64,000 bases of DNA, taken from sequence record NC_020851.1. One strand, given 5' to 3'. Both the position numbers and the translations under genes were made by a program. Shown here one piece after another: positions 1-58,664 of the stretch. How positions within the stretch are numbered: the stretch's first letter is position 1; each line of letters starts with the position of its first letter. The notes under the pieces were generated by a model. It saw nothing but the letters and a program-made list of their open reading frames with translations. It was not told where the DNA came from and searched no databases.

Positions 1-2331
1 AACTCGACTACTTCTATTGCACTTCTAGTAAATTTTTTAATTTTACTTTGAATTCCATTCTTTTTGAGAGTCGTGTTGACAACAACATTTGATCCATTGT
101 CCAATCCTTTAATGGTTACATTATTATTTGTCAAATTAAAAGAATCGGATGTGATTGTTCCAATTCCACCACCTGAAGCAGTAGTGTAATGTATAGAATA
201 TCTTTCTTGATCAAATGATTCGAAGAATGCACTTGTAATACCTGTTTTAGAAATATCAAAAGTTAAAGTATTGCCAGATACATTTAAATTATCACTTTGA
301 TCTATTTGTTTTGTTATTGCTAACTGTGAATTTGAAAGATCTACTAAAGAGATATTAGATTCTGGAAGATTTGCATAAAGAAATCCATTTTCACTATTTC
401 TTATTTGTGCTTTTCTAAGATTTGCTGTATAATCTCCATTAGAAATTGCGGTTCCAGTAAATACTCCATTAACACTAGGAATATTAGTAATAGTTAGTGA
501 TGCCAGATCTGAAGAAACGGTTACAACTCTATTATACCTCAAACTATTTCCTTGCACTACGCTAATTAAATCACCTTCTTTAACTCCGGAGAATAATTTT
601 CCTGGACTTGTTACAGTTGTAGAAGCAACATTAATTTCTGAAATTCCATTAGAGAACTTTTTAGAAATTAATACTGCATCTGCAGAGAAATCTGGAAAGT
701 TTGATATTCCTGTTTGTTTAACGGATTTGAGTTGGTCAATTGTATTTTGAGTAACACTTGCAATTGTCAATGCTGTTTCAATTCCATTAACAATTAGTTT
801 TTCTCCTGTTACAAAAGTTCCTGAAGTTTGACTGAGATCAAAAGATGTTGAAGAAGAACCAGAAACAACAAAACCACTCGCACCACTACTCTTTCCTTTT
901 ATAAAAGCAGATGTTAAGAGTGTTGTGCTTACATTAAAAATTACATTTGTATAAGTTTGAATATCATAAAGATATAAGTCCCACTGAGTTGCTGCACCAG
1001 AATATGCAGCATCAGTCAAATTAAATGTATATACTCTCGCAGCACCAATTTTTGTTCCTGCCGTCCCATCATCTTGAAGTTGATTATATAAATCTAAAGT
1101 TTCATTTTCTTTTGGAGCACCACTGACATTATTAACTCTAAGTAAATGCCCCATCTCAAATGGGATATTAGCACTACTTATACTTTCCGTATCTCTTGGT
1201 TTTTCTACATCTATAGCAGTTTCTGCGTCTATTGTGACATCATATCCATCAACATATGCTCTTCCAGGACTTACCTGTAGACACATTAAGTCATCTGATG
1301 GAGTATTTCCCTGTTCTGTAGTTTCTCCTTCTAAATATAAACCATCATTATCGATTTGATCATTTAATGAATTGAGTGCTTTAACATCAAACTCATCTAC
1401 GGTATAATGACCAGATTCATCAAATGTTCTTTCGGCAATATAATCCCTTATTAAATTATAGACAGGTTTATTTTCAATTTTTTAATTTTTCCTTCATCTA
1501 CTCTTAAAATCTCTACAAAATCAGTGTCTGTATTATTAGATATTTCTTTTTTGTAAGTGTTAGTGCTATTTTTAATCTATCTGCTCCTGGTGCCGCAAAA
1601 TTAGTAAAACCACTGGCATTATCATACAAAGATGAATCATCTTTTGCATTTACAATCGTTTCAGATATTTTTAATCCTACTCTATAAGAAGGAGTATTTG
1701 TATAATAGTCTAATATAAGTGTTTGCTTGGAAACCTCTACAAATGTTCCTCTAATAAAGTAAACTCCGTTATCAATAAATGCTGCTGAACCTGTAGATGT
1801 TGCTTCTTGAGAAATTAATGATGCAAAAGCAGTTCCTGCACTAATTGTAGTATTGCCATATGTAACATTTTCACTTGCAAATAACTGTTCCCCATCTTGA
1901 AATGTATCTACTTCTGCATCCTCTCCAGATTCTCCATATTTTACATAAATTGTAATGTCAGTTACTAAATCACTATCAGATGTAAGTGCAACTTCCTGAA
2001 TAGATGCTGTCACACCCGAAAGTTGTCCTGTAATCTTTTTTCCAATAAAATTCTTAATATAAACAGATATATCTATTCCTAAATTAACTGCATTTAATTT
2101 TACTGCAGAAAACTGATTATCAAAAGTTACAGATCCTGGAAGGACCATAGATCCTTCTTTAAAAATATTACCACCAAAAGACTCTACTTGATTCTGTAAG
2201 ATGGACTGGAGAGTTGTTAGTTCTCTAGCCTGAACTGGATATCCTGGTTTAAATAAAACTTTATAAAAGTTTTTATCCCCATCAAAATCATCATAGTATG
2301 GGCTGATATTTAAGTCGGTTTTTTGTGCCAT
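1..2331 (-). CDS. DUF4815/VrlC-like virion structural protein, runs off window edge; frame break at A-run ~1545
   Basis: N-terminus MAQKTDLNISPYYDDFD...VLFKPGYPVQARELTTLQSILQNQ is typical of this cyanomyovirus protein after gp8; adding one A restores TKKEISNNTDTDFVEIL...ERTFDESGHY. Confidence 0.8.
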
Positions 2332-2336
2332 CTTTT

Positions 2337-6800: not shown

Positions 6801-9800
6801 TAAATTTCTTAGAGAAAATTGGAATACCATTATCAGTTAATTCGAAACTATCTTTATTAATTCTACTAAGATTAATAGCATTATAGAATTTTTCATCAAT
6901 ACTTTCAGTTACAGCACCATATGATAAATCTAAAGGTTCATTAACAACATCTACTTCAGAATAGAATGATTTGCTGAATACTTCAATATCAATTTGACCT
7001 GTTTGATTTGAGTCTGGGAAGAATTTAAGTATTAAATCACTTCCAGATATTTCTCCACCAAATGTTCCAATACCAGAAGCATCATCTAATTCACTATCAT
7101 CATTAGATACTGAAAGGAAAGGTAATTGTTGTGTATAAGCATCAGTTCCTTCATCAATTAACATAACCTGATGAAGTGCTTTTGTAGAACCTATACTTAC
7201 TTGAACTAAAGATTTTGATGCATTAAATAAAGATCTATCTAAAGTTTGAATTGTTGTGGAAGAAGCACCTACTGTAGAATAATATCTAGAATCGTAAATT
7301 ATACTTCTTTCTTGACCATCAAATTGATCAGAAGATTTAAATCTATATGTACCAATTCCAGTAGATGTTGTTCCAAATCCAACAATATTAGTTCTTATCT
7401 TAAGTTGATCGGAAGAAGTATTTTCGTGTATTAGTGATAAAACACCACTTCCCAAGTCAGTGCAAGTGAATATACCTATTTGATTTCCTGTCGAAGAACT
7501 CAAAACATTGCTATCAATATAGTATTCTGATATGAAAGTATTTGTTCCAGCAATAGAAACATACAATCTCACATAATTCATATCATTAGTAACAGTATTA
7601 GTTACTTGTGCATTAACATAAAGAGATTCGAAATTATTAGAATCTAAAGAAATAATTGTTGTAGTTCCAATTCCCACACTAGTATTTTCTATATCAACAG
7701 AACCTGTCAGATTAATAAAACCTATAGATTGTGTTCCAACTCCCGATATATCTGAATTAAATATTTGCTTAATTACTTTTAAATCATAATTTGTATTCAA
7801 TGCATCATTAGGAACGAATCTTAAGAAAGTTTTTTCAGTTTCGTCTGTAAATAAGTCAAAAATACCATAATTAAATTCTTGTCCAGATATGGACTCATTT
7901 TCAACAATGACGGATTCTAATTCATTTTTTAAAATAGTAATATCTGTTAACTGAAGTTCAGTACCATCTTCACTAGACACTCTTAATAAGTAATTGAAAT
8001 ATGTTCTATTGTCAAGTTCGTCTACTAATAAAAATTCTGTAGATTCGGATTCTGAGTTTGAGAACTGATTTTGAAGATCATCAATTGTTAATACATTAAG
8101 ATTTTTTAATTCTGTATAATTTGTGAGTCTTTTACTTTTCAATTTTAAGAATTTTGATTTTGAATCTATAACATCAACATCAATAACATTATCAAAATTG
8201 TTGATAGTGTCTACTCTTTTCTCATCAATTACATCATAAATTATAGTAATTCCATCATTAGTAGTTGTTAAACCTGCACTAGTGTTTGAAGATATTCCAG
8301 TATCTGCAAAATTTTTCAATCCACTTGTATGAACTAAACTTTCTACTGGAGATTGCTGATCTTTATATGTTATTGAACTCTTTACGGAATATGATAAATT
8401 TTGATAGTAGTTATTGTCTGGAGTGACCTGAAAATCTTCGCTTAATTTTCCAGTTTCAGTATCCCAACCAATATCTTTAATATTGGAATAACCAACATTA
8501 AAAGTTCCTTCATTCAGATTCAAAGATTTAATTGTTGCAACAGAACCAGATTCATTTCCAGTAATAACTTCACCTACTGATAACTCATATGACCCTAAAA
8601 CTTTTAAAGAATCTCCATCACTTCCTGTAACTTCCAAATCTCTTATTATTTGATTTGAAGATAAAGTTTCTCCAATAAAAAATTTGGATGGTTCTTGAAC
8701 TATTTTAAATGTAGGATAATCATTTTTATTGATTATAACTCCACTAAAATCTTGAATTGTTTTTGCAATTCCAGTATTTGTAGTGAATTCTTCTACATTA
8801 ATTGTTACTGTATCATTAAGTCCCTCATTATCATAATTAGTTACTTTAAAGAATTTAAATCCATAATCTGAAGAATTAAATCCATCTCCATCAGAACTAA
8901 ATTTCGAAACACCTTCGATGAATACTTCATCTCCATCAGCAAATGGTGGAGTATTAAAAGTATTTCCAATACCAGGTGTTGATATAGTACATGTGAAAAT
9001 ACCAGTATTTGATGATTCTACTTTTTCAATTGCGACACCATTATTATTATTTGTTGAAAAAACTTCTACAGTTTCATCAGGTAAACCTTTTGGTTCAGTT
9101 TCAATTTCCACAGAAGAAATTGCAGATCCTGTTATTTTTGCTTCAATAAATCCAGAATCTATTATACTTCTTGTTGTGGGATTGATGAGAGTAATAAATG
9201 GTGGAGATACATAACCTTCACCTCCACTAATTACTGATATTTGACTCAGTGTATTTGAATCTTTTATTACAATATTTGGTGACACATTGACCTTAGGTCT
9301 TAAGGTTTTATCTGAAGAATAAGTAAATCTGTTATTGATAACTCTACTTTCTTTTATAGATCCTACATTTATTGATCTTGCATTTACAATTAAATCTACT
9401 CCGGAAGTAGAATTAGTAGATTTTAAAGTCGGTAATTTTTATATCCAGTTCCTGAAGATATAATACTTAAAGATTTAACTGGTCCAGATGGAGAAGTTGA
9501 TGTTGTTGAGTACTTTAATATGTCACATTCAGTTGAACCATAAGAAAGTTTTTCTGGTTTTTTCTCAATATTTACATTGAAAGTTGTTGCGGCAACACCA
9601 CTAATAGTGTATGAGTTATTATAGTCACTATTAATATACTTGATACTTGAATAGTTACTAACATCAGTGTCAGATTTGACTAATACTCCATCTTTTTCTA
9701 AGTTATAGAATAATTCACCAATTTGTGAGTTATAATCTAATGTAAGAGTTGCTGTAGATGTTACTCCAACAGTTCCTACCCCAGATACACTGAAAGTATT

Positions 9801-12800
9801 TGTAGAACCAGTAGAAACAAATTCATTATTAAACTCTTTGTCCTGATATAATCTCAGACTATAATTTACCAATGAAGAATCTGAAAGGTCAAATACTAAA
9901 TTATTATTTTTAACTGGTTGTAATTGTGGATTAATTAATGCTATTGTTTGTGAAGAACTTCCTGTAGAAGCAAAAGATACAACTGTTGGAGGATTTTGTT
10001 GAGAATCTATTAAAGTTTCACAGAGATTGATTCTATTTCTATTAATTTTGTAGACATAGTACTCACTATTAGTTAATGGTGATGGTCTAATAAATCTTCT
10101 AATAATATCATTACCACTAGAAGCAGCATAGAAATTTTCTTCGTCTGGGGAAACAGACATTACTGTTGGTGTATTTGGAGATCCCAAATCAATTCTATCT
10201 AATTCAGTGCCAGTAACAATGTCCCATGGTGTTGATAATTTATAAATGTAAATATTATCTGAACCAGCTCCGACCCAGTATACTAAGGTTCCAGAAGAAT
10301 TGATATGTATATCATTTGGATTTGTATCTGGAGGACTGACATCTAACCTACCCGTGCTATCTCCCGAATAGGATGCTGTTGTAATATCCCATGAGGTTGA
10401 AAGATCAAATTGGTAAATAAAATCTCCATTACTTCCAATTAAGTAAAGTACTGAACCATCATATTTAAAATAAAGTCCCGTTGGATTAATTTGTTGAGAG
10501 AATCCGTCAATAGAATTACCACTACCAACTAATAAACTTACATTATCATAACTTGCTGTGGTAAGATCCCATGCAGAAGTCATAGAATACTGATAAATTG
10601 TATCATTTTCATTACCGGTAATCCAGAACTTAAGACCATCCTCTCTGATATAAAGTCCAGTAGGACTGTTGTCTTCTGATGTAACATCAAACCTGTCCGT
10701 AAATACTGCCGTGCTCACACTCCAAGGTGTTGAAAGTGCATATTCATTGACTTCATCAGCAGAACTACCGAGAGCATACATTTTAGTTCCATCTGGTTTG
10801 AAACGTAATGATTGTAGACTACCATCTTGGGAACTAGTGTCTAATTGATCACTAGTTTCAATTAAGTATTCAAAATTATCATCTTCATAAAGAACTTTAT
10901 CACCAGTTACTAATTTATGATCTGTAATTGTGATTTCATTAGTTACTGTATTAATTCCTGTAGAGTTAAATCCAATTGGATTGACTACGATATTATCAAT
11001 TTCAGATTTATAAAGAACACGAACTGCTGTTGAAGTTCCAATACCCACTGAAAGATTTGGTTGAACATCTAATGTTACCGTATCTCCATTTTGAAGTTCA
11101 TGAGAAGTTGATACTGAAACGGTTACTACATTCTTATCCACATCTCCCAATATTTGAGTGTAATTAGATTCGAATGAATACTTATCACTATCATTTCCAT
11201 TATTATGGAAGAATAATTCTTCACCTGTAATTGCAGTCTTCAGTCCAATAATACTTGGACTTTTCTTAACAATAAAAAGATTACTTGGTATATTTACTGG
11301 GACAGATGTCCCATCAGTAGAAACAGTTAAGGTTGTTCCATTAGCAGTGTAAACAACTGGTTGATTTGTTACAAAAGGATGATTTTCGATGTAAATACCT
11401 TTTGTAGGAATACTTCTAGTTACAGTCGAAATATCACCAAATGTAAATGATGTACTATATCCAACCCCACTTATTGTCCCAACACCAACAGATTCTCTAG
11501 GATTGAAGAAAGCCTTATCATTTACTTTTGAATCAAATTTATCTACAGATTTGGCAATTGTAAATGAATCTGGTAAGAAAGATACTGCCGTTCCAACAGT
11601 ATGTGATACACCTGCCAAACCTCTTTCAATTCTGAGAATATTTTGGTTTTTAAATACTTCAAGAACTTTTAAAGTTTCTGTTCCAATATCAATACTACTA
11701 CCAACAGATACCTGTTCTGGAATTGGAGAAACATAAATTTCTGTCGTAAATCCTACAGATGCAGATGTTATTGTAGAAAGACATCTTCCATTTGCATAAG
11801 AAGGAACTGTGATTTGATGTGTTCCATTAAGTGCTGATAGATTTGTAGAAAATCCAGATACAGTTACATAATCTAGATTTAAAAGATCATGATTGGGTAA
11901 TATTGATACTTTTACTTTACTAGTAGATTCCCATGTAAAAATAGAATTTAAGTATTCAGTTGAATTTGTATTTAATTCTACGATACTCTTTCCCTTAATG
12001 GAAGCAACACTAACATCTAAACCACTTCCTGATGTGTCAGTGTTATCAAATATCAATCTATCTCCAACTTTATAATTGCTACCAGAATTTTCAATCTCTA
12101 TGGATTTTACAGAGTCTGATGTTACAGATACTACTTCTATTTTTTGATCTAGAACATCACTGGTTTCATTAATAAAATCATAATCAGCATTCAGTTCTGA
12201 TACTTTATATGGTAGTGTATTTCTTAATAAATTTGAATTATTGAAATCAAATGATTGGTCCAAATTAGAATCAGAAATTAATTTTGATTTATACTTATTA
12301 CCTATAAAATAGGGGAATTGATTTATCGTAGCATGATATACATAAACACCATTTGGATACTCTTCATTTTTTTCATATCTACCATTATATTCATCTAAAT
12401 CTCCATCTCCATTAAATTGATAATCCTCGACAAAAAATCCATCATCAAATCCAGAAGGTCTATCTACAACATTTGAAGAATCGAGAGTGTATCCAGATTC
12501 TAGTGTTTTTACTCCTGAAGGTATTGCAGGATCAGGATATCCATATGGACCGTAAATTGGATTTCCATCATATGCCCAACCAATAATCCCAGATCGTGAA
12601 GTTGCATCTTCTAAGAAAGCATTTCTCAAATCTTCAAAATACTTTGATACTGAATATTGGAGTTTATCTTTACCTTCTAGTAAAACTTCTCCTGTAGGAA
12701 ATCTTACAATATTATCATTAAGAGTTAATTTTCTGACTTGAGGATCAATAAAGGAATTATTTCCTGATGAAACAACTTGAATCTTTGTGTTTGATGCTGA

Positions 12801-15800
12801 ATATCCAATACCAGTATTCAGAACCTTAACTTCTGATATTTGACCATTATTAATTATTGCTCGTAATTCTGCACCGGTTCCAGAACCAGAAACAATCAAT
12901 TCCGGAACAGAATAATATTCACTCCCAACAAAACTTGTAAAAACACTAATTATTCTTCCATCAACAATAGATGGTGTTAATTGAGCAGATTTTCCATTTT
13001 TTATAGAAATTATTGGTTTTTTCTCTAAATTTAAAATTGTGGACCCATATCCAGTTCCAGATTCATAAACATAAGCATCAATAATGCTTCCTTTTACTAC
13101 TGGAGTTAATACTAAGTCTTGATACTCTTGAGTAGTAGTTCCAAATCCTACAGAATTATATTTAATTGAAACAGAAATGTCCGGATATTTGAAATATTGA
13201 TATCCACTTCCCGTACTATCAAATGTTTTATAATCTTGCCTTTCATAATTAGAAACAACTGTTCCCCCAATTCCGGCATCACATAATCTAAACGAATCGT
13301 CGTCAACTTTTAAAATAAAGTATTGATTTGCAGTTGTAATTCCAGATATCTGCCCAGATTCATAATCATATTCTACAATTTCACCATTATTAAATCCATG
13401 ATTCTTAAAGTTAATAGAGTTTTGTGTCGTAGATATTCCGGTAGGACTTACAATCAACTTTCTATTCGTATATCCTTCACCTTTGTCAATTACTTTTATG
13501 TAAGAAACTTGTCTTGAAGACGAAAGTGTTGAGAATTTATGTGATCCAATAGAACCTGTATAGATTCCTACAACATTTGTATCTGATTGTTGATCACTTA
13601 AATTATTATATAATTTTATTGCTTTATTGTTAGTAACACCAACAAAATAGGTTGAATTAGTAGGAAGATTGATATTATTTCCTGCAGTTCCAATTGCTAT
13701 TGGATCATTACCTAAAGGATTATAAATTACTTCTTGACCATTAACAAAGTTATGATCTGTTAAAAATACAATTTGATTCGTTGTTTCACTGACTCCCCCA
13801 CCACTAGAAAATTCATCTGCATCAAATAAAACTTCTCTGGGTTTTTTGATTATTACGGGTTCAATTACTGCACCACTACCATTTCCACCTGAAATATTAA
13901 TAGAGGTTATTTCTCCAATATTATAATCTTGCGAATCTACATATACTTTTTCAAAACCTCCACTAATGACTGGTTGAATTTTTGCAGTAATACCAGCACC
14001 AGTAGAAACATTAACTAATGGTAGATTAATTACATCAAAATTTTCACCACCAGAAAGAATATTTACTTTCTCAATTGGGCCATAATAAATTGCATCTTTA
14101 GATTTGTAATTATTAATTTCGACACCATTAATTAGCATTCCAGTAGTTCCCGGAATCGTTAAAGTTCCAGAACCATTTTCAATATTTTTTCTAATGGAAA
14201 CTTTCTTAAAAGTTTTTGTATTCCTAGATCAGTTTTTATTTGAGAGTTTAAAGTAAAAGTATGAGTTCCTATGCCAGAATTTGGTACTTGAAATGTTACA
14301 TTACTGTCCGAATTTAATAAAGAGGGTGTAGTATATAATTTAAATTTATTTGTAGATGTTACTTTTACATAATAATTGCCAGTTTGCAATCCAACCAAAG
14401 GTTCATCTTGTGGAAGATAATATATTTTATCTCCTGTTAAAAATGGAATAGAAGGATTGAATTCAATTGTATTATAAACATCTTCAAAAAAATCTACAAG
14501 ATTATTTGTGCTAGCAATACTTACTTTTTTAATACTAGTTTCAATATCAAGACGATAATTTATAATTTTTTCATCATCTTCGTCTAAAATTACTTCTGAT
14601 GGTAGTGAATTTGATGCAACATATGCATAATCATCTTTATCAGCATATACATTAAGAATGTCTGATAATACAGAACTACTCCCAAAATCTGAACCTGAAG
14701 ATTTTGTTTTATTTAATTTTCTTCTTATATCATATTCTTTACTTGGATCTAAAGTTGGTCTGTTTCCTAATGTTAAAGAATTTTGGGATTCATTAGTATT
14801 TTGGATATAAGTCGTATCATTAGAAAATACTATATTTTCACTTCCTCTTTCTAATATTTCAACCTTATCTCCAATTTTTAAACTGGATCTATCAATAGTA
14901 GATCCTAACTTAGTAGTATTATTATCTACAATTTCATATCTTGCACTTGTATTGTAGATAAAAGAATTTGCAAAAATTTCTTTCCAGGTTGAATTTCTAT
15001 TCTTAATCTTATCTCCAAGATTTTTGACTACAATTATATCGTTTTCATCTACTTTAAAGTCTTCATTTTCTTCTACTAAATCTTGTATTACTCCAAGTAA
15101 TATTAATTCAACTTTCTTGGAAGTATCGCCATCTTCATAGGAAAAATAAGTATCATCAGATCTAATATTTGATGCTGTAGATATTGTATCACTGATACCA
15201 GTACATCCAAAAAACTGATTAATACTTTTTCCAGTATAAGAAATAGTATTATTTCCAGAAACTAATGTTCCTGATTGTGGAAAACTTAAAGTAGAATCTA
15301 CAGTTAAGATGGTTGATCCCACTGATACACTTTCAATTAACTTTGTATTTGGTGTGATTTCAAAATTTCCTACAACTGATGAAGAATTCTCAGTATTTCC
15401 AATATAAAATTCAATTTTATGGAATGTTTTACCTTTTCTTGAAAATGGTTCTATTGCCGATATTGAAGCAGTTGTGTTCTCATCAGTGGTCTTTATAAGA
15501 GTTTGTCCGACAATCTTTGAGGGTTCTCCTGATATTACCTCTGCTATTGCAACTTCTCTTCTTACATAATTTGCAGAAGATGGTTTGATTAAATAATCTT
15601 CCAAATTTATAATTGAAGGTGTTTCCCCAAAAATAACTTTAAAAAGAATTTTTATTGCTTCATCTGTTCCTTTAGAAGCATAAAAATCTTTTGCTCTTCT
15701 GATGAAATTTCCAACATCAATTTCATCTACAAATTTAATATCTTCTAATCCTGGAGTAAAAGTATACTTCAGTTTTTTATAAAAATCCTTTAAAAATAAA

Positions 15801-16282
15801 GAACTTAAATTTTGTACAGATGAACTATCAGAATGTTCTGCTGCTGTTGATGTAGAAAAAACAAGTTCTTCTTTATTTAAATCTTGATGATAATCTGTAA
15901 CACCACTAAATCCGCGCACACAACCAGTAAAACTATTCGTAGTAATTCCTGTATATGTGATGATTTCATCATTAATTTTAAGGAGTCCATACTGATTAGG
16001 GAATCCTTTTGTGCTAGAGACATTAATTGTAGTGTCAGTAGATGTTATACTAGTACTAGTTGTCGTACTATCAACAATAACTTCGGGTTTTAAATTATCT
16101 AATTTTAAATACTGATCCAGATTATCACTAATATCAATAGGACCACCTTGATATTCTTGTGAAATATAATATTGTTTTAAAAATTCTACAGCATTTGGAC
16201 TTTCATCCAAGATAAACTCTGGAAGTTGATGATCAATTAGATCTTGTACTTTGATTCTAGATTCAAAACCAGTTTGTATCAT
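3896..16282 (-). CDS. gp7: giant baseplate wedge initiator gp7-like protein (~4130 aa), split by frame breaks at ~14188, ~9438, ~6107
   Basis: ORFs 14159-16282, 9423-14138, 6097-9285, 3896-5674 join when one base is added to each homopolymer; N-terminus LPEFILDESPNAVEFLKQYY; GWAYDGNPIYGPYG motif; lies between gp6 and gp8. Confidence 0.75.
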
Positions 16283-16283
16283 A

Positions 16284-23802: not shown

Positions 23803-23913
23803 TTGGTGAATTCCTGATGACTTAACTACAATACACGATTTTGAGGTCTGTGCCGAAACCTTGTGCCACTTTGTCCGACTGTCCACTCGCGGCTGACCTG
23901 AGTATCATTTAGT
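23803..23913 (-). promoter_or_regulatory. early promoter cassette B
   Basis: -10 TATTGT 23828-33; dyad 23865-83; near-identical to C/D/E. Confidence 0.75.
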
Positions 23914-25338: not shown

Positions 25339-25536
25339 TTATGAATTCATATCAGTCCAAGTTTCTTCACCATAGCAATCGATAATCTCCCCTTTCAACT
25401 CATCCATATTGTAATCTTTGAGATTCTGTTCAATACTTTCAACCGCAAAAGTAATCAACGAATCCATATCCATTCCTTCTACAATCATCTCTGCATAAGC
25501 ATTCTTCAGTTGATCGATTTGATTGAGAGTCATCAT
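25339..25536 (-). CDS. small acidic early protein
   Basis: 65-aa ORF between repeated junctions. Confidence 0.7.
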   Translation of the reverse strand: MMTLNQIDQLKNAYAEMIVEGMDMDSLITFAVESIEQNLKDYNMDELKGEIIDCYGEETWTDMNS

Positions 25537-25578
25537 TTGAAAAAAAGTGTTAGTTAGTGTGAGTTGAGTAAGTGTTAC

Positions 25579-25728
25579 TTAAGCAAGAAGATTATCAATC
25601 ACACGTTCAACATCTGCCGAAACTTCAATGCCTTGAGATTCACAATAATCAAGACACATTTGAAGGTCAGGTTGCATCTCCTCTACGAAATCATAGAGGG
25701 TTTCAAATACAGTTTGAGAACAAGTCAT
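25579..25728 (-). CDS. small acidic early protein, paralog family member 3 (49 aa)
   Basis: manual translation MTCSQTVFETLYDFVEEMQPDLQMCLDYCESQGIEV. Confidence 0.6.
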   Translation of the reverse strand: MTCSQTVFETLYDFVEEMQPDLQMCLDYCESQGIEVSADVERVIDNLLA

Positions 25729-25762
25729 AATGTTAGTTAGTGAGTGAATGAGTAAGGGTTAC

Positions 25763-26002
25763 TTAGTCTATAAGTTCTTTCATCATTTCGTTTACTTCTA
25801 TTCCGTTGATATTAACATCGTCCCACTTACAACTGTCTGGTGTTTCTTTACTTCCGGCATCGTGAATCATACTTACCAGATGTCCATAAGTTCCACCATC
25901 CCTTGCAACATCACATGCCAGTTCATACAAACCAGGATCATTTCCGATCCAGAGAGCAACATTCCAGGTCTCCCAATTTGTCCAACCGTTGTAACCTTGC
26001 AT
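25763..26002 (-). CDS. conserved phage early protein
   Basis: MQGYNGWTNWETWNVALWIGND, a motif common in phage early genes. Confidence 0.75.
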   Translation of the reverse strand: MQGYNGWTNWETWNVALWIGNDPGLYELACDVARDGGTYGHLVSMIHDAGSKETPDSCKWDDVNINGIEVNEMMKELID

Positions 26003-26082
26003 TTGGTGAATTCCTGATGACTTAACTACAATACACGATTTTGAGGTCTGTGCTCATTTATTGTGCCACTAATACTTTTGGC
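26003..26082 (-). promoter_or_regulatory. early promoter cassette E
   Basis: -10 TATTGT 26028-33; dyad 26065-82; leader identical to B. Confidence 0.75.
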
Positions 26083-26094
26083 ACATAGTATCAC

Positions 26095-26313
26095 TTACAC
26101 AGTACGAATCGTGATACTACACATTAACTCATGAGCAACATCGATAGAGTCATCTTCTCTCACAATTGGAAGATTAGTATCAACAAACTCCGAAGCAAGA
26201 TCCATCATTAACTCATGCATTCTTTCATCTCCTGCTGCAAACTCAGCAAACTCTTCAGAGAATCCGGATGCTAACCTACGAATTGCTTCGTCATGTACAT
26301 TGAGAACGGTCAT
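26095..26313 (-). CDS. small acidic early protein
   Basis: 72-aa ORF. Confidence 0.7.
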   Translation of the reverse strand: MTVLNVHDEAIRRLASGFSEEFAEFAAGDERMHELMMDLASEFVDTNLPIVREDDSIDVAHELMCSITIRTV

Positions 26314-26353
26314 TTTGAAAAAAAGTGTTAGTTAGTGAACGAATGAATGAATG

Positions 26354-26518
26354 TTACTTAGCAGGGAAATTCTTACACACAGCATCACATAAAATCTTCA
26401 CAAGTTCTTCATCATAATTGACATCATACTGTGCAAAGTAATCAGTGATGATACAATCAATGTCTTCCATCAATTGTTCACGACTAGTTAACATGTCAAG
26501 TGTGTCGTTGTTAATCAT
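26354..26518 (-). CDS. small acidic early protein (54 aa)
   Basis: manual translation MINNDTLDMLTSREQLMEDIDCIITDYF. Confidence 0.6.
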   Translation of the reverse strand: MINNDTLDMLTSREQLMEDIDCIITDYFAQYDVNYDEELVKILCDAVCKNFPAK

Positions 26519-26525
26519 TTTTAGG

Positions 26526-26605
26526 GTGAATTCCTGATGACTTAACTACAATACATGATTTTAGGGTCATGTGCTCATATAGTGTGCCACTTCCCCGACT
26601 GTCAC
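26526..26605 (-). promoter_or_regulatory. early promoter cassette F
   Basis: -10 TATTGT 26548-53; dyad 26586-603. Confidence 0.75.
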
Positions 26606-26680
26606 ACTCATAAGGTCTCTCTATGGGTCTTATAAGGTCTTCTAATGCCCTCTCGTGACAGTCGGGGAAGTGGCACACTA
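26580..26680. repeat. perfect 26-bp inverted repeat, 49-bp spacer
   Basis: TAGTGTGCCACTTCCCCGACTGTCAC (26580-605) and its reverse complement (26655-680). Confidence 0.95.
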
Positions 26681-26712
26681 ATACACGTCTACGGTCTCTC
26701 TGATGCTAATAT
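26657..26712 (+). promoter_or_regulatory. rightward copy of the early promoter
   Basis: dyad 26657-74 then 32 bp then TGc-TAATAT 26707-12, same spacing as cassette F. Confidence 0.5.
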
Positions 26713-26830
26713 CAACATTCTCGTCACCTTCCAGTCCTAAGATATCATTCCAATCAATATCTTTAAGATTTAAATCATCATAACACTCGATGTCTAATGT
26801 AACACTTATGATGCGTTTGTGTGCGTACAT
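26678..26830 (-). CDS. small acidic protein (50 aa)
   Basis: manual translation MYAHKRIISVTLDIECYDDLNLKDIDWNDILGLEGDENVDISIRETVDVY. Confidence 0.6.
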   Translation of the reverse strand: MYAHKRIISVTLDIECYDDLNLKDIDWNDILGLEGDENVDISIRETVDVY

Positions 26831-26906
26831 GTGTATCTCGTATGATGTGTGTTATAATGTGTTATGTGTACACATATCTCGTAATGTATACATGTATCTC
26901 GTAACG

Positions 26907-27110
26907 TTATGCGTAATGTTTATACGCAAGCTCTACGTAATCACATGTATCTCGTGCGTACTCATCATCTATCTCGTATGTATCCTGGGTGTTATGTGTA
27001 TCTCGTAGTGTATATGTATCTCGTGCATAATGCTCACACATCTCGTCTTTATAATACGTATAAGACTCGTTGTTATAATGATACTGTAACTCGTGGTCTT
27101 CGTAATACAT
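26907..27110 (-). CDS. Tyr/Asp-rich small protein overlapping the TCTCG array
   Basis: 67-aa ORF ending EYARDTCDYVELAYKHYA, resembling small ORFs I recall from other cyanomyoviruses. Confidence 0.5.
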   Translation of the reverse strand: MYYEDHELQYHYNNESYTYYKDEMCEHYARDTYTLRDTHNTQDTYEIDDEYARDTCDYVELAYKHYA

Positions 27111-27200
27111 GGGTCTCGTCGAGATTTGTATGTTACTTGTATATTATACAGACATCTCGCACGTATGTCAAGTATGATCTCGTGCGGCATTCATAAGCAT

Positions 27201-27208
27201 TATTTATA
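27201..27208 (-). promoter_or_regulatory. possible T4 late promoter TATAAATA
   Basis: exact match; a second at 27487-94; both in AT-rich context. Confidence 0.4.
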
Positions 27209-27257
27209 AGTCTCGACGAGAAAAATGTGTGGGTCTCAGAGTTTTTATGCGGGGTGC

Positions 27258-27286
27258 TTGACAAAACTGCCGTCTTGTGGTAGAGT
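27258..27286 (+). promoter_or_regulatory. rightward sigma70 promoter with no downstream ORF
   Basis: TTGACA-17-TAGAGT with extended -10 TG. Confidence 0.7.
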
Positions 27287-27308
27287 GCGGGTAAAGGTCA
27301 CAAGTCTC

Positions 27309-27412
27309 AGAAGGTTTATAAGAGTATTAGAGAAGGTTTATAAGAGTATTAGAGAAGGTTTATAAGAGTATTAGAGAAGGTTTATAAGAGTATTAGAGAA
27401 GGTTTATAAGAG
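27309..27412 (+). repeat. 22-bp tandem repeat x4.7 (iteron-like)
   Basis: AGAAGGTTTATAAGAGTATTAG at 27309, 27331, 27353, 27375 plus 16-bp partial at 27397. Confidence 0.95.
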
Positions 27413-27413
27413 G

Positions 27414-27464
27414 TTTTCCACACATAAAAGACACTTATCCACAGAAATAACCCACTTATCCACA
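27414..27464 (+). promoter_or_regulatory. three DnaA-box consensus sites at 21-bp spacing
   Basis: TTTTCCACA 27414-22, TTATCCACA 27435-43, TTATCCACA 27456-64. Confidence 0.75.
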
Positions 27465-27570
27465 GACTTGTTGGAAAACAGTTTTATATTTATAATCATA
27501 TTTAAAACCTATTTTTTAACTCATAATGTAACAATCGATACAAAATACATAGTTTAGTCATGTAATCAAT

Positions 27571-27600
27571 AGTATAAGGCATCTAGGAACACTTATGGGT
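27571..27600 (-). promoter_or_regulatory. leftward promoter facing the DnaA boxes
   Basis: TAGATGCCTTATACT, shared with promoters at ~28500 and ~28760. Confidence 0.45.
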
Positions 27601-27791
27601 TAGTTGACATGAATAGTTAGAGTTTTACCATCTGATGACAAACCTATGGAGCAGTGAGTGAGTTCCGGTCTAATCTCTCTATGACTAACAGTAGCACCCT
27701 TGTGATAATGGGACGAATGATCAACAACTAACTCTTCAACACTTGATAGTATTGTTGCATAGATTTCATTTGAATCAATTATGTACTTCAT
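27600..27791 (-). CDS. hypothetical protein
   Basis: 63-aa ORF overlapping upstream stop (ATGA). Confidence 0.6.
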   Translation of the reverse strand: MKYIIDSNEIYATILSSVEELVVDHSSHYHKGATVSHREIRPELTHCSIGLSSDGKTLTIHVN

Positions 27792-28510
27792 TTTTTATCA
27801 CCAAATAGTTTGTTCATATAATCAAGCACATCATCATTAACAGTATCATTAATAGATGCATCTACTACATCATCAATAGCATTACCTGTCAATACACTCT
27901 TAGTTGCAGAAGCAGTAATTAGAAATGCCTTAAGTTTATCCTTCGTCTTATCTTCTTTCTTCTTTCTTTTTATGGCAACGATTTCATCAATACGACTTTG
28001 AATCTTTTCATTCAGAGTAGAATTAAATCCTACCTTTGACATATCATGCAATCTGAGGAATTCCTCAGATAAAGTTTCTCTCAGAAAGATTGGTGAATTG
28101 ATATAACAATCAATCAGATCATCAGGAAGATGAACATTCAAATATAATTTTGGATGACATGTGTTTTCATCATTCATATATAAAAACCCAGAACGATGAG
28201 TATCATAAATGGCACGAAGGATTTCTTCATCATCAGATGTTTTTGCCCATTCACCAATTATTGTTCTATCTTCTTTCCAAACATAAAGCAAACAAATAGG
28301 TCCTCGCCTCTTAGAATACTGTGCTTTCCATTCAGGAAGAGAATGTTCTTTATAAATTTCTGACGTAATTGTTGCTTCTTTAATAACATACAGAATTAAT
28401 TCTTTTTCTGTTGCAAATAATGGGTCTGGGTCTGGAACTGAATTAGATTCGGTCTGATGAGAAAAGAAGTTAAACATGTGTTTGTTTTGTATGTGATTAT
28501 TATAGGGCAT
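27788..28510 (-). CDS. hypothetical protein (240 aa)
   Basis: long ORF behind TATAAT promoter at ~28499. Confidence 0.7.
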   Translation of the reverse strand: MPYNNHIQNKHMFNFFSHQTESNSVPDPDPLFATEKELILYVIKEATITSEIYKEHSLPEWKAQYSKRRGPICLLYVWKEDRTIIGEWAKTSDDEEILRAIYDTHRSGFLYMNDENTCHPKLYLNVHLPDDLIDCYINSPIFLRETLSEEFLRLHDMSKVGFNSTLNEKIQSRIDEIVAIKRKKKEDKTKDKLKAFLITASATKSVLTGNAIDDVVDASINDTVNDDVLDYMNKLFGDKK

Positions 28511-28541
28511 CTATGTGCCCTATGGTGGTTCAGTGGTCAGC

Positions 28542-28732
28542 TTATGAATTGGCAAGCATATGATATTGCAGAATGGTAAGAAATGTTATAAGAGGAAGAA
28601 ACATAATAATTCCTTGTAAGACCTGATTTTTAATCATTTCCATTACAAAAAAATCCATCCAACAACAAGACCGGTAAAAAACAGGACAACTGCCACATGA
28701 CCAATTGCCTGTAAAAGAATTCCAAAATCCAT
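28542..28732 (-). CDS. small two-TM membrane protein (frame break ~28650), paralog of 34045-34242
   Basis: MDFGILLQAIG...MIKNQVLQGIIMFLPLITF. Confidence 0.55.
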
Positions 28733-44565: not shown

Positions 44566-45757
44566 AACGACGGATAACAGATACTGCTGCCTCACCACGA
44601 TTGAATACGGTGTCAACGACTGCCTGAACGGACTTGGCAGTGCTGATGCCCACTTTATCGTAGACTGGAACACAGACCAGTCCAAAGGTCTTCTGGGGAC
44701 CACCCAACCTAATGACCCGTCCAATACTTTGCGAAATACCGATATAATCCATGTTTCTCATGAACAATACTGCCTCAAGTCCACTGACGTTGATACCCTC
44801 GGACAAAATAGAGTGATGAAGAACAACAAACTTTTTGCTAGGATCTTTGCCCCATGCATTCAGAGTATCAAAGAATACCTCACGATTGACTTTCTGACCA
44901 TCAATAATAGCACCAGTCTTGGATGTAATATACAAACAAGAATAACCACGTTCAGACAACTCTTTGCGAAAGTCAGATTGACTCAGAAGTTTGATAATCT
45001 GTTTGGTAGAACGTGCGGCAATCAGAATCTTATCCAGTGAGTTCTCATCAATTGTCTCAATCAGATTCTGACAATCACGGTCGGCAATCATCTGCTTGTC
45101 CTGAACCATATCCAGTTGCTTTACAACAACCTTAGGTGGCAGAATGTATCCTTGCTCTACTAATGTAGGAGCAGGAATGTTACAGATGACTTTACCGTAG
45201 ACCTCATAGTCATTCATCCCTGGTTTGTAAATAGAGAGAGAATGCTTAGGAGTAGCAGTGAAGAAATAACACCGATCAGCATCAGCAGAAAAGTGCTCCG
45301 TAGCAGGGAAAAAGTTACGTTGGACTGAGTTATGTGCTTCATCAAAGTAAATCGTATTGACTTCGATATCTGCTTCTACAAGACGATGTAGAGAGTGATA
45401 TGTGGTAAAGATTACTACATTCTCACCAGCAGTTCTTGCTGTATTTACAAACAGATTGATCTTTTCTGCTTTTGTTGTAGAGAAGTGTGAAGTCTCACCA
45501 CTATGAACATGCATAATATGGGTATGAGTTGTATCGATTACCTCAAGAAACTCACTACAAAGTTGTTCAGCAAGTAGAATACGAGGAGCAACAACAACAA
45601 AAGTTTGCCCATGATGTCTGACTTCCATATTGGTAATGGCATCATCAATCATACAAATAGTCTTGCCACCACCCGTAGGAATGATTACCTGACCTTTGTT
45701 GTTCTGCCACATCGCATTGACTGCTTCATGCTGGTGAGGACGAAGAGTGATGGTCAA
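44564..45757 (-). CDS. SF2 DEAH helicase (ResIII-like)
   Basis: PTGGGKT, DEAH, TAT, QSIGRVIR. Confidence 0.9.
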   Translation of the reverse strand: MTITLRPHQHEAVNAMWQNNKGQVIIPTGGGKTICMIDDAITNMEVRHHGQTFVVVAPRILLAEQLCSEFLEVIDTTHTHIMHVHSGETSHFSTTKAEKINLFVNTARTAGENVVIFTTYHSLHRLVEADIEVNTIYFDEAHNSVQRNFFPATEHFSADADRCYFFTATPKHSLSIYKPGMNDYEVYGKVICNIPAPTLVEQGYILPPKVVVKQLDMVQDKQMIADRDCQNLIETIDENSLDKILIAARSTKQIIKLLSQSDFRKELSERGYSCLYITSKTGAIIDGQKVNREVFFDTLNAWGKDPSKKFVVLHHSILSEGINVSGLEAVLFMRNMDYIGISQSIGRVIRLGGPQKTFGLVCVPVYDKVGISTAKSVQAVVDTVFNRGEAAVSVIRR

Positions 45758-54215: not shown

Positions 54216-54217
54216 AA

Positions 54218-54292
54218 TACCCGTGATCGGACTCGAACCGATACTGTCGAAATTTTAAGTTTCGTGTCTACTGCCAATTGGACTACACGGGC
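54218..54292 (-). tRNA. tRNA-Leu(UAA), short variable loop, no CCA
   Basis: GCCCGTG/CACGGGT acceptor, CGAAA-CTTAAAA-TTTCG, TTCGAGT T-loop, A73. Confidence 0.85.
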
Positions 54293-54296
54293 ATAA

Positions 54297-54430
54297 CATT
54301 ACACTTATCCGTATGCTATGTGGGCATCACACCCAGTATACTGACAGTTTGTAATGGAGCAAAAAGAAAGTAACCAACTCTCTAGATCACAGTGTGGTTA
54401 GCACCGTCGCGGGCGAGCTCATTCCCCGTC
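54297..54430 (-). ncRNA. structured ncRNA inside the tRNA cluster (possibly manA motif)
   Basis: TAACCA/TGGTTA and CATTACA/TGTAATG stems with nested hairpins; manA identity is from memory only. Confidence 0.5.
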
Positions 54431-54433
54431 TAA

Positions 54434-54506
54434 TGCAGGTTGTGGGAATTGAACCCACCTTCGCCGTTTTATGAGAACGGTCCATTCACCAGATTGGTAA
54501 ACCTGC
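54434..54506 (-). tRNA. tRNA with CAU anticodon (elongator Met or Ile2)
   Basis: GCAGGTT/AACCTGC, CCGTT-CTCATAA-AACGG, TTCAATT. Confidence 0.85.
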
Positions 54507-54509
54507 AGA

Positions 54510-54597
54510 TACTCGTGGATCGATTTGAACGATCTCAAAGGCACTAATCGGGTGCAAAGAGTTTATAAGACTCCCCTGACTACCAAGTCTCACGAGC
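54510..54597 (-). tRNA. atypical tRNA with UAU (Ile) anticodon and long variable arm
   Basis: GCTCGTG/CACGAGT, GGAGT-CTTATAA-ACTCT, GCAC/GTGC variable stem, GATCG-TTCAAAT-CGATC. Confidence 0.7.
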
Positions 54598-54607
54598 AGA
54601 TGATGAA

Positions 54608-56651: not shown

Positions 56652-58664
56652 TTATACGCAATCTATAACACTAATAATTTCATTCTGTGGAGGTTGTGGG
56701 GGAATAAATGTTCCTATTATTGGTTTTATAAGTGCTCCAATACCAGTTTCTGTACTAATTGTAATTATCGGCAACTGAGTTACTTTCAATCTATTTATCG
56801 GAGATGCTGATATAATTTTTCCATCTTCGATAGTAAGATCATACTCTTCTCCATTATCATCAGTTGCGGTATCTCCAGGATCATATCCAGTTCCTGGATA
56901 AAGAACTATTGTATCTACAATCGAACCATCATCTAATTCTATTTCAGAACCTTCGAGTGTATCTTCTACAGGATAATTTTCACCCTCCGAAACCATATAA
57001 ACACCTGTAATTTGTCCATAGGTTGAAGAATTTTTGTCGTAATCAACAATTGCTCTTCCAACTGCACCGTATCCAAGACCACAAGAATCTTCAAAAGTAA
57101 CCATTGGTGGAGCATAAGTATATTTAGAACCTGGATCTGTAATCTCGACTCCAATAATACTTCCAGTTCTTGCAACAGAAGATGTTATTTCTCCTAAACC
57201 ATCAGTATTATTGACAATTCCGCCCATAATTACTTTACCAGCACCACCTATACCATTTCCACCGAAGAATGATACTGTTGGTCCTCCACAACTTGTTGGA
57301 GTTCCACAATCAGGTTTACTATATGGTGAAGTTAGTGTTGTTATGCCAGACAAAGCATTTGAAATATTTGCAAATTCCAAGGCATTATCTAAAATATCAT
57401 TCACTTTTGCTTTATTTTTTGGACCATATCCAATTGTCCATTCCTTAACACCATCACATTTATCTGCAGTTTGATTACAACTAAAGAAATTTTGAATAGA
57501 TTTTATTACATCAACAGAACTACGAAGAAAATCTACAATTTTAAATCCTGGACTTGCCAATTCTAAAATCTTACTAATTCCACCTATAACAGAATCTAAT
57601 CCGGACGATATTTCATCAATAATACCATTCAAGAAAGATCCAATAAATTGTTCTGCCGTACAAACTCCAAAATTAACAACCTCTAAAACAGTTGATTCAA
57701 TTAAATCTTTGAGTGTATCTCCAAGACCATTAATAATTTTTGCAGAAACACATGCAATTGCATCTTGTGCTGCTTTTAATGGAGGAACCATCGATTCTTG
57801 TGCGGCAACACCAGCTAAATGTGCCGCAACTGGATTTCCTGTTGAAGCAAGAACTGCAGCATAAACCTGTTTATATAAAAGATCTAATCCACTTTTTAAA
57901 ATTGGAATTAATGCGGTATATAATGAGTTGAATAAAGTTCCTACAAACTGATTAGCAAGAACCTGTATTTTTTTAACTGCATTTTGAATGTCTTGAAGAA
58001 AATCAGTTCCTTCACTAATAATATTAATTAGATTTCCTAATATTCCAGTAACTTCTGTAGCAAAATTATCTTCACAAGTATCAGCAAAAGTTATAACATT
58101 TCCTGTTGCACTAGATGCTTTTACTTCTCTTGCTTTACCTTTCTCTTTATTGTTTTCATTTAGAGGATCAACATTTTCTATATTTCTAGGTTGTTTTTGA
58201 TCCTGTGAACTTTGTCCTGTTGATTCTCGATCACTTTTTGTATCCGGTCTTTTTATATTTGTAGTATAACCAGTAAATGGAACAAAAGGATTTGATGGTT
58301 CAAGTGATGGTGTAAATTGTGTTTTTCCAAAAGCACCCATAATCACCGGAATTTGTGCATCATCACCATCAAGAAAAAACCCTACAACAATATCTCCCTG
58401 ATTAATCCTAGCACTTTGAGCAAATCCACCACCACCACTTCCTGCGGTTGTGGGCATCATAACTCCTGCCCAAGGAAGATCTTCATCAGAAAGTTCGATG
58501 TAATTATCAGGGTGATATCCTAATATTCTAACCTTATATCTGAATGCCCAACCTTCTCCATTTGCTTGTTCTGGTGCAGAAGCAGTTTGTGCAATTTGAC
58601 CAATCCACCAACGAAATCCGTCTCGTCCAATAAAATTGCTTTTGAGTGTAGATTCTTCTATCAT
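56652..58664 (-). CDS. gp5: baseplate hub gp5 (OB-fold N-terminus)
   Basis: FRWWIGQI, YKVRILGYH, LPWA, GDIVVGFFLDG..AQIPVIMG. Confidence 0.8.
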   Translation of the reverse strand: MIEESTLKSNFIGRDGFRWWIGQIAQTASAPEQANGEGWAFRYKVRILGYHPDNYIELSDEDLPWAGVMMPTTAGSGGGGFAQSARINQGDIVVGFFLDGDDAQIPVIMGAFGKTQFTPSLEPSNPFVPFTGYTTNIKRPDTKSDRESTGQSSQDQKQPRNIENVDPLNENNKEKGKAREVKASSATGNVITFADTCEDNFATEVTGILGNLINIISEGTDFLQDIQNAVKKIQVLANQFVGTLFNSLYTALIPILKSGLDLLYKQVYAAVLASTGNPVAAHLAGVAAQESMVPPLKAAQDAIACVSAKIINGLGDTLKDLIESTVLEVVNFGVCTAEQFIGSFLNGIIDEISSGLDSVIGGISKILELASPGFKIVDFLRSSVDVIKSIQNFFSCNQTADKCDGVKEWTIGYGPKNKAKVNDILDNALEFANISNALSGITTLTSPYSKPDCGTPTSCGGPTVSFFGGNGIGGAGKVIMGGIVNNTDGLGEITSSVARTGSIIGVEITDPGSKYTYAPPMVTFEDSCGLGYGAVGRAIVDYDKNSSTYGQITGVYMVSEGENYPVEDTLEGSEIELDDGSIVDTIVLYPGTGYDPGDTATDDNGEEYDLTIEDGKIISASPINRLKVTQLPIITISTETGIGALIKPIIGTFIPPQPPQNEIISVIDCV

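Follow-up and report, generated by a model that had tools for sequence, protein, structure and literature searches.

The DnaA-box locus of phage S-SKS1

The element described here is a candidate replication-control locus of Synechococcus phage S-SKS1, a T4-like cyanomyovirus of the genus Llyrvirus with a genome of 208,007 bp (NC_020851.1) that infects Synechococcus WH7803. The DNA analysed is a 64-kb stretch of that record (record positions 124001-188000; hereafter the window), and coordinates are window positions unless marked as record positions, which are higher by 124,000. Reading the sequence alone, an initial annotation had proposed that about 1 kb near 27 kb forms an iteron/DnaA-type origin, or a locus of DnaA control, in a T4-like cyanophage. 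The locus lies among small hypothetical genes that fill about 25 kb (the early small-gene region), in a genome whose genes are almost all on the minus strand. Its central features, in order, are:

27143..27171, minus strand (reading 27171 to 27143): predicted sigma70-type promoter P_left, TTGACA-17-TATAAT, a perfect 12/12 match
27258..27286, plus strand: predicted sigma70-type promoter P_right, TTGACA-17-(TG)TAGAGT, a 10/12 match with an extended -10
27293..27413, plus strand: non-coding purine-rich leader with 33 G and 4 C (GC skew +0.78, purine fraction 0.68)
27309..27412, plus strand: 22-bp tandem repeat AGAAGGTTTATAAGAGTATTAG with core GGTTTATAAG, 4.7 copies, 100% identical
27414..27464, plus strand: three consensus DnaA boxes at 27414 (TTTTCCACA), 27435 (TTATCCACA) and 27456 (TTATCCACA), phased at exactly 21 bp
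27481..27552, no strand assigned: AT-rich tract of low duplex stability, a candidate DNA unwinding element (84% A+T over 70 bp from 27482)

The description of S-SKS1 as a T4-like cyanophage is essentially correct. The genome carries T4-type genes for replication, recombination and structure (gp43, gp41, gp61, gp44/62, gp45, gp32, gp59, UvsX/Y/W, gp46/47, gp55, gp33, gp23, gp18 and gp6), with the UvsW_N domain of UvsW confirmed, and its gp6 shares 50-59% identity with the gp6 of recognised Kyanoviridae, about the distance that separates those phages from one another. The label is fair because of this gp6 identity together with the T4-type gene set.

Non-random occurrence and retention of the DnaA boxes

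The three phased boxes reported by the initial annotation are present as described, on the plus strand and with exact 21-bp spacing. Single DnaA boxes are not enriched in S-SKS1: the window has 9 where 12.4 are expected, and the genome has 21 where simulations give about 38. The phased triplet has an analytic expectation of 5e-6 per genome, occurred in none of 300 simulated genomes and is the sole DnaA-box cluster in the 208-kb genome.

For a comparison independent of the boxes, relatives were fetched through the neighbouring 240- and 67-amino acid (aa) proteins, regardless of whether boxes were present. Between S-SKS1 and four such relatives (L008, L263, L267 and L305), 26 of 27 box positions are identical compared with 13 of 25 spacer positions (Fisher p = 2.6e-4), and the sole box change is an A to T where the consensus permits either. 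Across seven sequences, invariant columns number 25/27 in the boxes versus 8/25 in the spacers (p = 7e-6). The spacers are 52% identical, as against roughly 90% in the flanks. Judged from these alignments, the pattern of intact boxes and diverged spacers is one of selective retention of the boxes.

Scanning IMG/VR for the pattern of phased DnaA-box triplets gave at least 117 stretches (L020-L136). These contigs span GC contents from 0.19 to 0.70, some have arrays of 6-9 boxes, and most are unrelated to S-SKS1. At least 23 of them share S-SKS1 genes and represent other T4-like cyanophage contigs with arrays; they carry at least 19 distinct box/spacer haplotypes, with near-random spacers (38% identity), and several are as far from S-SKS1 as other recognised Kyanoviridae genera. 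Among the matches listed, 22 of 23 loci have boxes pointing opposite to the genes, as in S-SKS1.

In cultured phages, no box cluster lies next to the SWZG_00171 homologue in P-SSM2, S-SSM7 or S-T4, and a distant BLAST search with the element as query yielded no homologue of it in any cultured phage other than S-SKS1. Two cultured Kyanoviridae have convergent perfect box pairs in non-coding gaps upstream of baseplate genes: S-MbCM100 (L261, record ~44581-44613), as TTTTCCACA-N14-TGTGGAAAA, and P-TIM68 (L262, record ~58194-58216), as TTTTCCACA-ggtat-TGTGGAAAA. T4-like cyanophages may therefore carry DnaA boxes more widely.

The first box, TTTTCCACA, has the cyanobacterial DnaA-box sequence; in electrophoretic mobility shift assays, domain IV of a cyanobacterial DnaA bound both this type and the E. 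coli type TTATCCACA (PMC4674748). Triplets of TTTTCCACA at 21-22 bp occur mostly in cyanobacterial genomes, including one Nostoc array between dnaN and dnaA. Such an array was considered as a strict mark of the chromosomal origin oriC and rejected: only two of six cyanobacterial loci checked were at dnaA/dnaN. A search of all S-SKS1 open reading frames (ORFs) for DnaA or its domain IV, by tblastn and phmmer with two cyanobacterial DnaA queries, gave nothing below E = 0.3. Since S-SKS1 lacks a DnaA of its own, the host protein is the likely binder, and it is quite probable that the boxes are real binding sites.

Promoters, antisense leader and AT-rich tract

The boxes lie downstream of P_right, which the initial annotation had recognised as a rightward sigma70 promoter and which we place at 27258-27286 with an upstream TG. 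P_right is antisense to every neighbouring gene and is kept in every allele type found among the relatives, where a conserved AAGGTCACAAG/GATCACAAG start region comes next. About 90 bp away is P_left, which was absent from the initial list; it is retained in L007, L010, L070, L109 and L273-L300, and the first gene downstream of it is the 67-aa SWZG_00191. A leftward promoter that had been suggested beyond the AT-rich tract is weak, its best match (TTGATT-16-TATTTT) being 8/12 and below the scan threshold.

Downstream of P_right there is no plus-strand ORF of 30 aa or more. The leader contains the seven 100-bp intervals with the highest G skew in the window, and the predicted P_right transcript is less structured than its shuffled counterparts (z = +2.2). 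This, with the variable length of the repeat region, led to rejection of a structured non-coding RNA as the product of P_right. The scarcity of C in the leader should favor an RNA-DNA hybrid. The sequence proxies for R-loop formation (G skew, purine fraction and unstructured RNA) hold in close relatives, though not in L044 or L094.

The AT-rich tract noted in the initial annotation ranks in the top 0.07% of genome intervals for A+T content and in the top 0.09% for low duplex stability. Its sequence is conserved in L010, L032, L047, L050, L130, L263, L267, L299 and L303. All homing-endonuclease-free alleles examined have such a tract, at 81-87% A+T, even where another inverted-repeat site replaces the DnaA boxes. 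In S-SKS1 the tract lies on the 3' side of 5'-TTATCCACA-3', the same side as the unwinding region at E. coli oriC box R1 and B. subtilis incC boxes 6/7. The array also has the one or two consensus boxes expected of an oriC module (two perfect TTATCCACA and one TTTTCCACA), and box orientation matters in bacterial oriC (PMC6669920). A perfect T4-type late-promoter octamer, TATAAATA, occurs within the tract on the minus strand (27494 to 27487), reading with the genes; it could be a chance occurrence in AT-rich DNA.

The 22-bp repeats

The 22-bp tandem repeats are real, with 4.7 identical copies, and, with the DnaA boxes and the AT-rich region, they were the basis for comparing the locus with the iteron plasmid origins of P1, F and R6K. 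In relatives, 1-5 repeats around TTTATAAG or TTTATGAG stand between P_right and the site module, but their number and unit length differ in every lineage: units range from 11 to about 70 bp, and only an 8-10-bp core is conserved. Because repeat number and unit length vary in this way, the perfect 22-mers of S-SKS1 are a recent, lineage-specific expansion of a variable TTTATAAG-core repeat and not conserved iterons. DnaA boxes and an AT-rich region do adjoin the repeats, as at iteron origins; conserved 17-22-bp iterons and a linked Rep gene, also expected there, were not found. The iteron-plasmid analogy is not borne out.

Polymorphism of the locus among relatives

To describe variation at the locus, 35 distinct relatives were sampled through the 67-aa gene, regardless of boxes. 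The shared layout consists of P_left with its TCTCGWCGAGA palindromes, P_right, a C-poor repeat leader, a swappable site module and an AT tract of 81-87% A+T. The site module takes several forms. A three-box array is present in six relatives, one or two boxes in four and no box in 25. In eight box-less alleles (L273, L281, L284, L288, L292, L295, L298 and L300) the inverted repeat ATTCTCAAT..ATTGAGAAT stands where the DnaA boxes would be, and their AT tract often contains four to five helically phased TTTTTAAT-like 11-mers spaced 10-12 bp apart, units that should give intrinsically bent DNA. Two relatives (L299 and L303) have two degenerate boxes followed by the same AT tract as S-SKS1.

The slot after P_right is also a hotspot for homing endonucleases of at least two GIY-YIG types and one HNH type, always antisense to the surrounding genes. 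In 21 of the 35 relatives, P_right and the repeats are followed closely by the start of an antisense ORF of 179-345 aa. Pfam searches of five representative slot ORFs identified GIY-YIG in three (one also SegE-like) and HNH in one, with no hit for the fifth (the MSQGIIY type); the remaining ORFs were assigned by N-terminal motifs. Examples occupy 6150-6960 in L019, 330-1145 in L017, 7540-8080 in L007 and ~6770-7805 in L008, with others in L264-L311. One GIY-YIG type (MAYIYSITNN...) co-occurs with boxes, which lie between the promoter and the gene, whereas other endonuclease types replace the boxes. S-SKS1 represents the 'empty' allele of this slot. Since relatives that have neither endonuclease nor boxes keep both promoters, the repeats and the AT tract, the DnaA array is one exchangeable module in a conserved frame, dispensable for the lineage.

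Flanking repeats, palindromes and neighboring genes

The remaining features of the locus lie on either side of this core:

26580-26605 and 26655-26680, no strand assigned: inverted repeat with perfect 26-nt arms and a 49-nt spacer, between two minus-strand genes
26678..26830, minus strand: 50-aa gene SWZG_00190 (phrog_12516, E = 8e-24), downstream of the 67-aa gene
26836..27045, plus strand: eight (T/C)ATCTCGT half-sites in direct orientation, partly within the 67-aa gene
26907..27110, minus strand: 67-aa acidic, Tyr-rich gene SWZG_00191, a conserved neighbor of the element
27114..27124, no strand assigned: operator-like palindrome TCTCGTCGAGA, just downstream of the P_left start
27211..27221, no strand assigned: palindrome TCTCGACGAGA, between P_left and P_right
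27600..28510, minus strand: 63-aa and 240-aa genes (240-aa ORF at 27788-28510), judged to lie outside the element

The initial annotation had described an inverted repeat with divergent promoters. The perfect 26-nt arms are there, but a consensus scan finds no sigma70 pair at this position. The arms are two inverted copies of an upstream motif, ACAGTCGGGGAAGTGGCACA (ACAGTyGG..AAGTGGCACA), which has five other copies in the genome and precedes several small minus-strand genes; minus-strand copies end at 23870, 25109, 26070, 26591 and 35631. A -10-like hexamer lies about 28-29 nt beyond each arm, and the copies in front of the minus-strand genes likewise have one about 28 nt downstream. In relatives the arms co-vary at four positions (CACTTCCCCGACTG in S-SKS1 versus CAGTTCCTCTACTG in L010/L078), a pattern compatible with selection for a hairpin or cruciform, or else with gene conversion from one arm to the other. 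An Rfam search of 25500-28600 found no known RNA family, only sub-threshold miRNA and snoRNA models matching the long hairpin.

The TCTCG array is likewise genuine: 14 plus-strand copies lie between 26651 and 27211 (about 560 bp), with two on the minus strand, against a genome mean of 0.2 per 500 bp, and all five occurrences of GTATCTCGT in the 208 kb are at this locus. Its reading as a purely DNA-level iteron array was rejected in part, in that six copies lie in the conserved 67-aa gene, where the motif encodes Arg-Asp on the minus strand, and the conserved element is instead the palindrome TCTCGWCGAGA around P_left. This palindrome occurs twice in the genome, both times at this locus, and flanks P_left in two to three copies in all relatives. 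It looks like an operator for a dimeric regulator.

Full-length homologues of SWZG_00191 (46-100% identity) are found in 53 IMG/VR loci, and the ORF is intact in L007 at 72% DNA identity. The 63- and 240-aa ORFs, put forward earlier as Rep candidates, fared less well. Pfam and PHROGs searches of nine neighboring ORFs revealed no Rep family, and the 240-aa protein had no profile match to a PDB sequence and no Foldseek match at E <= 0.001, its AF2 model being all-alpha with a pLDDT of 68. Paralogues of this protein occur in phages without the element. Nor are the two ORFs conserved neighbors: in L123/L098 the boxes are flanked by homologues of the 82-aa SWZG_00194 on one side and of the 67-aa gene on the other, with the 63-aa and 240-aa genes absent there, and in L010 the 63-aa gene is located elsewhere. 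The 240-aa family has multiple paralogues with a conserved C-terminus (KKKEDKTK...LTGN.IDDVV...VLDYMNKLF), and the true start of the S-SKS1 member is probably 11 codons later than called, at MFNFF, as in its homologues.

Elsewhere in the window, ARAGORN predicted three adjacent tRNA genes at 54217-54598 (Leu-TAA, Met-CAT and a 91-nt Ile-TAT call), of which the public record annotates tRNA-Leu only. Two stretches of about 7 kb amid the baseplate genes have no annotated gene (record 118976-126336 and 133286-140283; window 1-2336 and 9286-16283) and may hold structural genes that are very large or interrupted. The numbering of locus tags in the record omits 00161 and 00165.

A proposed transcript-primed origin that recruits host DnaA

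The locus is well supported as a DnaA-binding cassette, and an origin role for it is plausible but unproven. DnaA binding, promoter activity, R-loop formation and any replication initiation are inferred from sequence. The general proposal of an origin or DnaA-control locus stands, in that the boxes are non-random, maintained, of the host type, turned toward an unstable AT tract and downstream of a conserved promoter; its analogy to iterons and a Rep protein does not.

The reading we favor, tentatively and at somewhat short of even probability, is that of an accessory origin, primed by a transcript as at T4 oriE/oriF, to which host DnaA is recruited. The locus would be a modular non-coding cis-element with divergent sigma70-type promoters flanked by TCTCGWCGAGA palindromes. 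Host RNA polymerase would transcribe the C-poor, unstructured leader from P_right toward the boxes, and the transcript would form a primer or R-loop at the downstream unwinding element. Host DnaA on the three phased boxes would open the AT tract or hold it open or, alternatively, help to load the helicase before phage proteins accumulate. We favor this reading because of the promoter, the C-poor leader, the boxes facing the AT tract and the persistence of that tract when the slot is free of endonuclease. An A+T-rich unwinding element downstream of a promoter, together with a T4 replisome and UvsW, is also what a T4-type origin would involve.

Several observations weigh against an origin of this kind. 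The AT tract starts about 190 nt from the predicted transcript start, compared with minimal T4 origins of about 100 bp, and distant relatives (L038, L056, L079, L095, L097, L104 and L129) have no AT tract after their boxes. The array is optional among the 35 relatives, and an endonuclease ORF fills the slot in most of them. The DnaA-trio signature of bacterial origins is not clearly present: a run of at least three NAN trios should start within 16 bp of a box (PMC8287927), and in S-SKS1, read by eye, only two trios start 2 bp after box 3, with a run of seven starting 18 bp away that is unremarkable in DNA of 84% A+T. Whole-genome GC skew, suggested earlier as a check, lends no support to an origin, as the cumulative curve declines steadily, following gene orientation, without a turning point at record position 151.4 kb; with nearly all transcription running in a single direction, skew is weakly informative on origin position. 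Divergent transcription is limited to the local P_left/P_right pair, which with the monotonic skew departs from expectation for a T4-type origin. T4-type initiation is not known to require DnaA, and we know of no link between DnaA and gp59 or gp41. Finally, DnaA is dispensable for replication in some cyanobacteria, and dependence on it varies (PMC7198777).

Alternatively, the locus may be a DnaA-controlled antisense unit, in which DnaA on the boxes acts as a repressor or roadblock that limits or times P_right transcription of the variable slot, occupied in most relatives by a Seg-like GIY-YIG or HNH gene; with the slot empty, the same roadblock would keep P_right transcription out of the convergent 63-aa and 240-aa genes. 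P_right is present in all allele types, endonuclease genes are always downstream of it in its orientation, and the MAYIYSITNN... type has the boxes between promoter and gene. The fixed orientation of the boxes relative to transcription, in 22 of 23 loci among the matches listed, also recalls E. coli, where DnaA-box complexes block transcription in an orientation-dependent manner. However, this explanation leaves the conserved, extreme AT tract and the C-poor repeat leader unaccounted for, an intrinsic terminator would be a simpler solution, nothing lies downstream to regulate in S-SKS1, L010, L263 or L267, and the box-less alleles have no equivalent block. We regard it as a less probable account, though one with a real chance of being correct. 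A datA-like sink, in which hundreds of phage-genome copies titrate or inactivate host DnaA and so stop new rounds of host chromosome replication, is improbable: three boxes are few and would be effective only once phage replication was under way, T4-like cyanophages already have other ways of degrading host DNA or shutting it off, and neither the fixed orientation and 21-bp phasing nor the upstream promoter and AT tract would be explained. Even so, a sink is favored by the host-type, high-affinity-type character of these consensus boxes, by an array that is accessory and varies within the population, as expected of a host-takeover function, and by the more distant relatives, which have 5-9 boxes and no AT tract.

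The 9-mers could instead be bound by a protein other than DnaA, or be a functionless by-product of endonuclease traffic or of host DNA captured at a recombination hotspot. The site is indeed a hotspot with at least four allele classes, the low identity of the spacers relative to the flanks shows mosaic recombination, and other alleles have ATTCTCAAT..ATTGAGAAT at the same place. Yet neutral remnants would decay, whereas exact consensus matches persist across at least 19 haplotypes with near-random spacers and the sole variable box position is the A or T that the consensus allows; no DnaA-like protein was found in S-SKS1 either, and we consider an explanation of this sort about as doubtful as a sink. 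Very unlikely, in our estimation, is a plasmid-type iteron origin in which a phage Rep on the 22-bp repeats acts with DnaA to open the AT tract, as at P1 oriR, F oriS, R6K and RK2. The order of repeats, boxes and AT tract does resemble RK2 oriV and R6K gamma, and a TTTATAAG core is kept in one to five copies between P_right and the boxes in all relatives, so that some protein may bind it, but the perfect copies are recent and unconserved in number and unit length, no Rep was detected, and the candidate ORFs, including an all-alpha 240-aa protein without a match and with paralogues in element-less phages, are not conserved neighbors. A more speculative possibility, which we also rate as unlikely, is that the locus is a modular, exchangeable origin cassette: some alleles would recruit host DnaA, so that host DnaA level gates phage DNA synthesis, and others would use a different binder or endonuclease double-strand breaks.

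Relation to known replication systems

T4 itself offers the closest framework for a transcript-primed origin. At T4 oriF and oriG a promoter is combined with an A+T-rich unwinding element and a persistent R-loop serves as primer, oriE combines an early promoter with direct repeats, single origins are dispensable, and UvsW shuts off R-loop origins late in infection (PMC3016281). S-SKS1 shares the T4-type replisome (gp43, gp41, gp61, gp59, gp32 and UvsW), and its candidate origin has a predicted promoter of the host-polymerase type leading into direct repeats and then an AT-rich tract, in non-coding and individually dispensable form. It differs in its DnaA boxes, since T4 has none and no known DnaA requirement, in the distance of the AT tract from the predicted transcript start and in an unconserved repeat number.

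By analogy, the closest known combination of transcript priming and a DnaA box would be the ColE1/pBR322 origin, at which the RNA II R-loop primer is accompanied by a nearby DnaA box that helps helicase loading. Both would have a DnaA box downstream of the promoter of a priming transcript and a G-rich, C-poor transcribed region. However, pBR322 has one box and not a phased triplet, RNA II is highly structured whereas the S-SKS1 transcript is unusually unstructured, and the replisome is another. Iteron origins (P1 oriR, F oriS, R6K gamma, RK2 oriV and pSC101) similarly pack direct repeats, DnaA boxes and an AT-rich region into about 300 bp, but the S-SKS1 locus is on a lytic T4-like phage, lacks a cognate Rep gene and has repeats that are not conserved iterons.

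Cyanobacterial oriC shares with the locus the TTTTCCACA box type, direct arrays phased at 21-22 bp and boxes facing an AT-rich region. Unlike oriC, the S-SKS1 array is not beside dnaA/dnaN, has three boxes only, lacks clearly present trios and has a promoter and repeat leader upstream. E. coli datA is likewise a high-affinity box cluster outside the chromosomal origin, but it needs IHF, promotes hydrolysis of DnaA-ATP and involves no promoter or unwinding element; to our knowledge nothing datA-like is known in cyanobacteria.

Implications for T4-like cyanophages

A full-text literature search found no paper linking cyanophages with DnaA boxes. A review of T4-like cyanophages covers the replication origin only as a predicted single theta origin in Syn9 (PMC2984593), and Ori-Finder-style DnaA-box predictions have been published for a few unrelated lytic phages. 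Use of the host initiator at an origin is not known for T4-type phages. The phased triplets in at least 117 viral contigs suggest that DnaA recruitment by phages may be under-appreciated, and the allelic series at this locus, with DnaA boxes, another inverted-repeat site and three kinds of homing endonuclease, constitutes a natural experiment for dissecting function.

T4-like cyanophages are among the most abundant viruses in the ocean, and the locus provides a precise candidate site for the start of their replication. Expression of dnaA in Prochlorococcus is diel and rises just before S phase (PMC2921402). The locus makes it conceivable that a T4-type phage uses, senses or disables the host initiator, which would tie infection dynamics to the host cell cycle and to its day-night rhythm.

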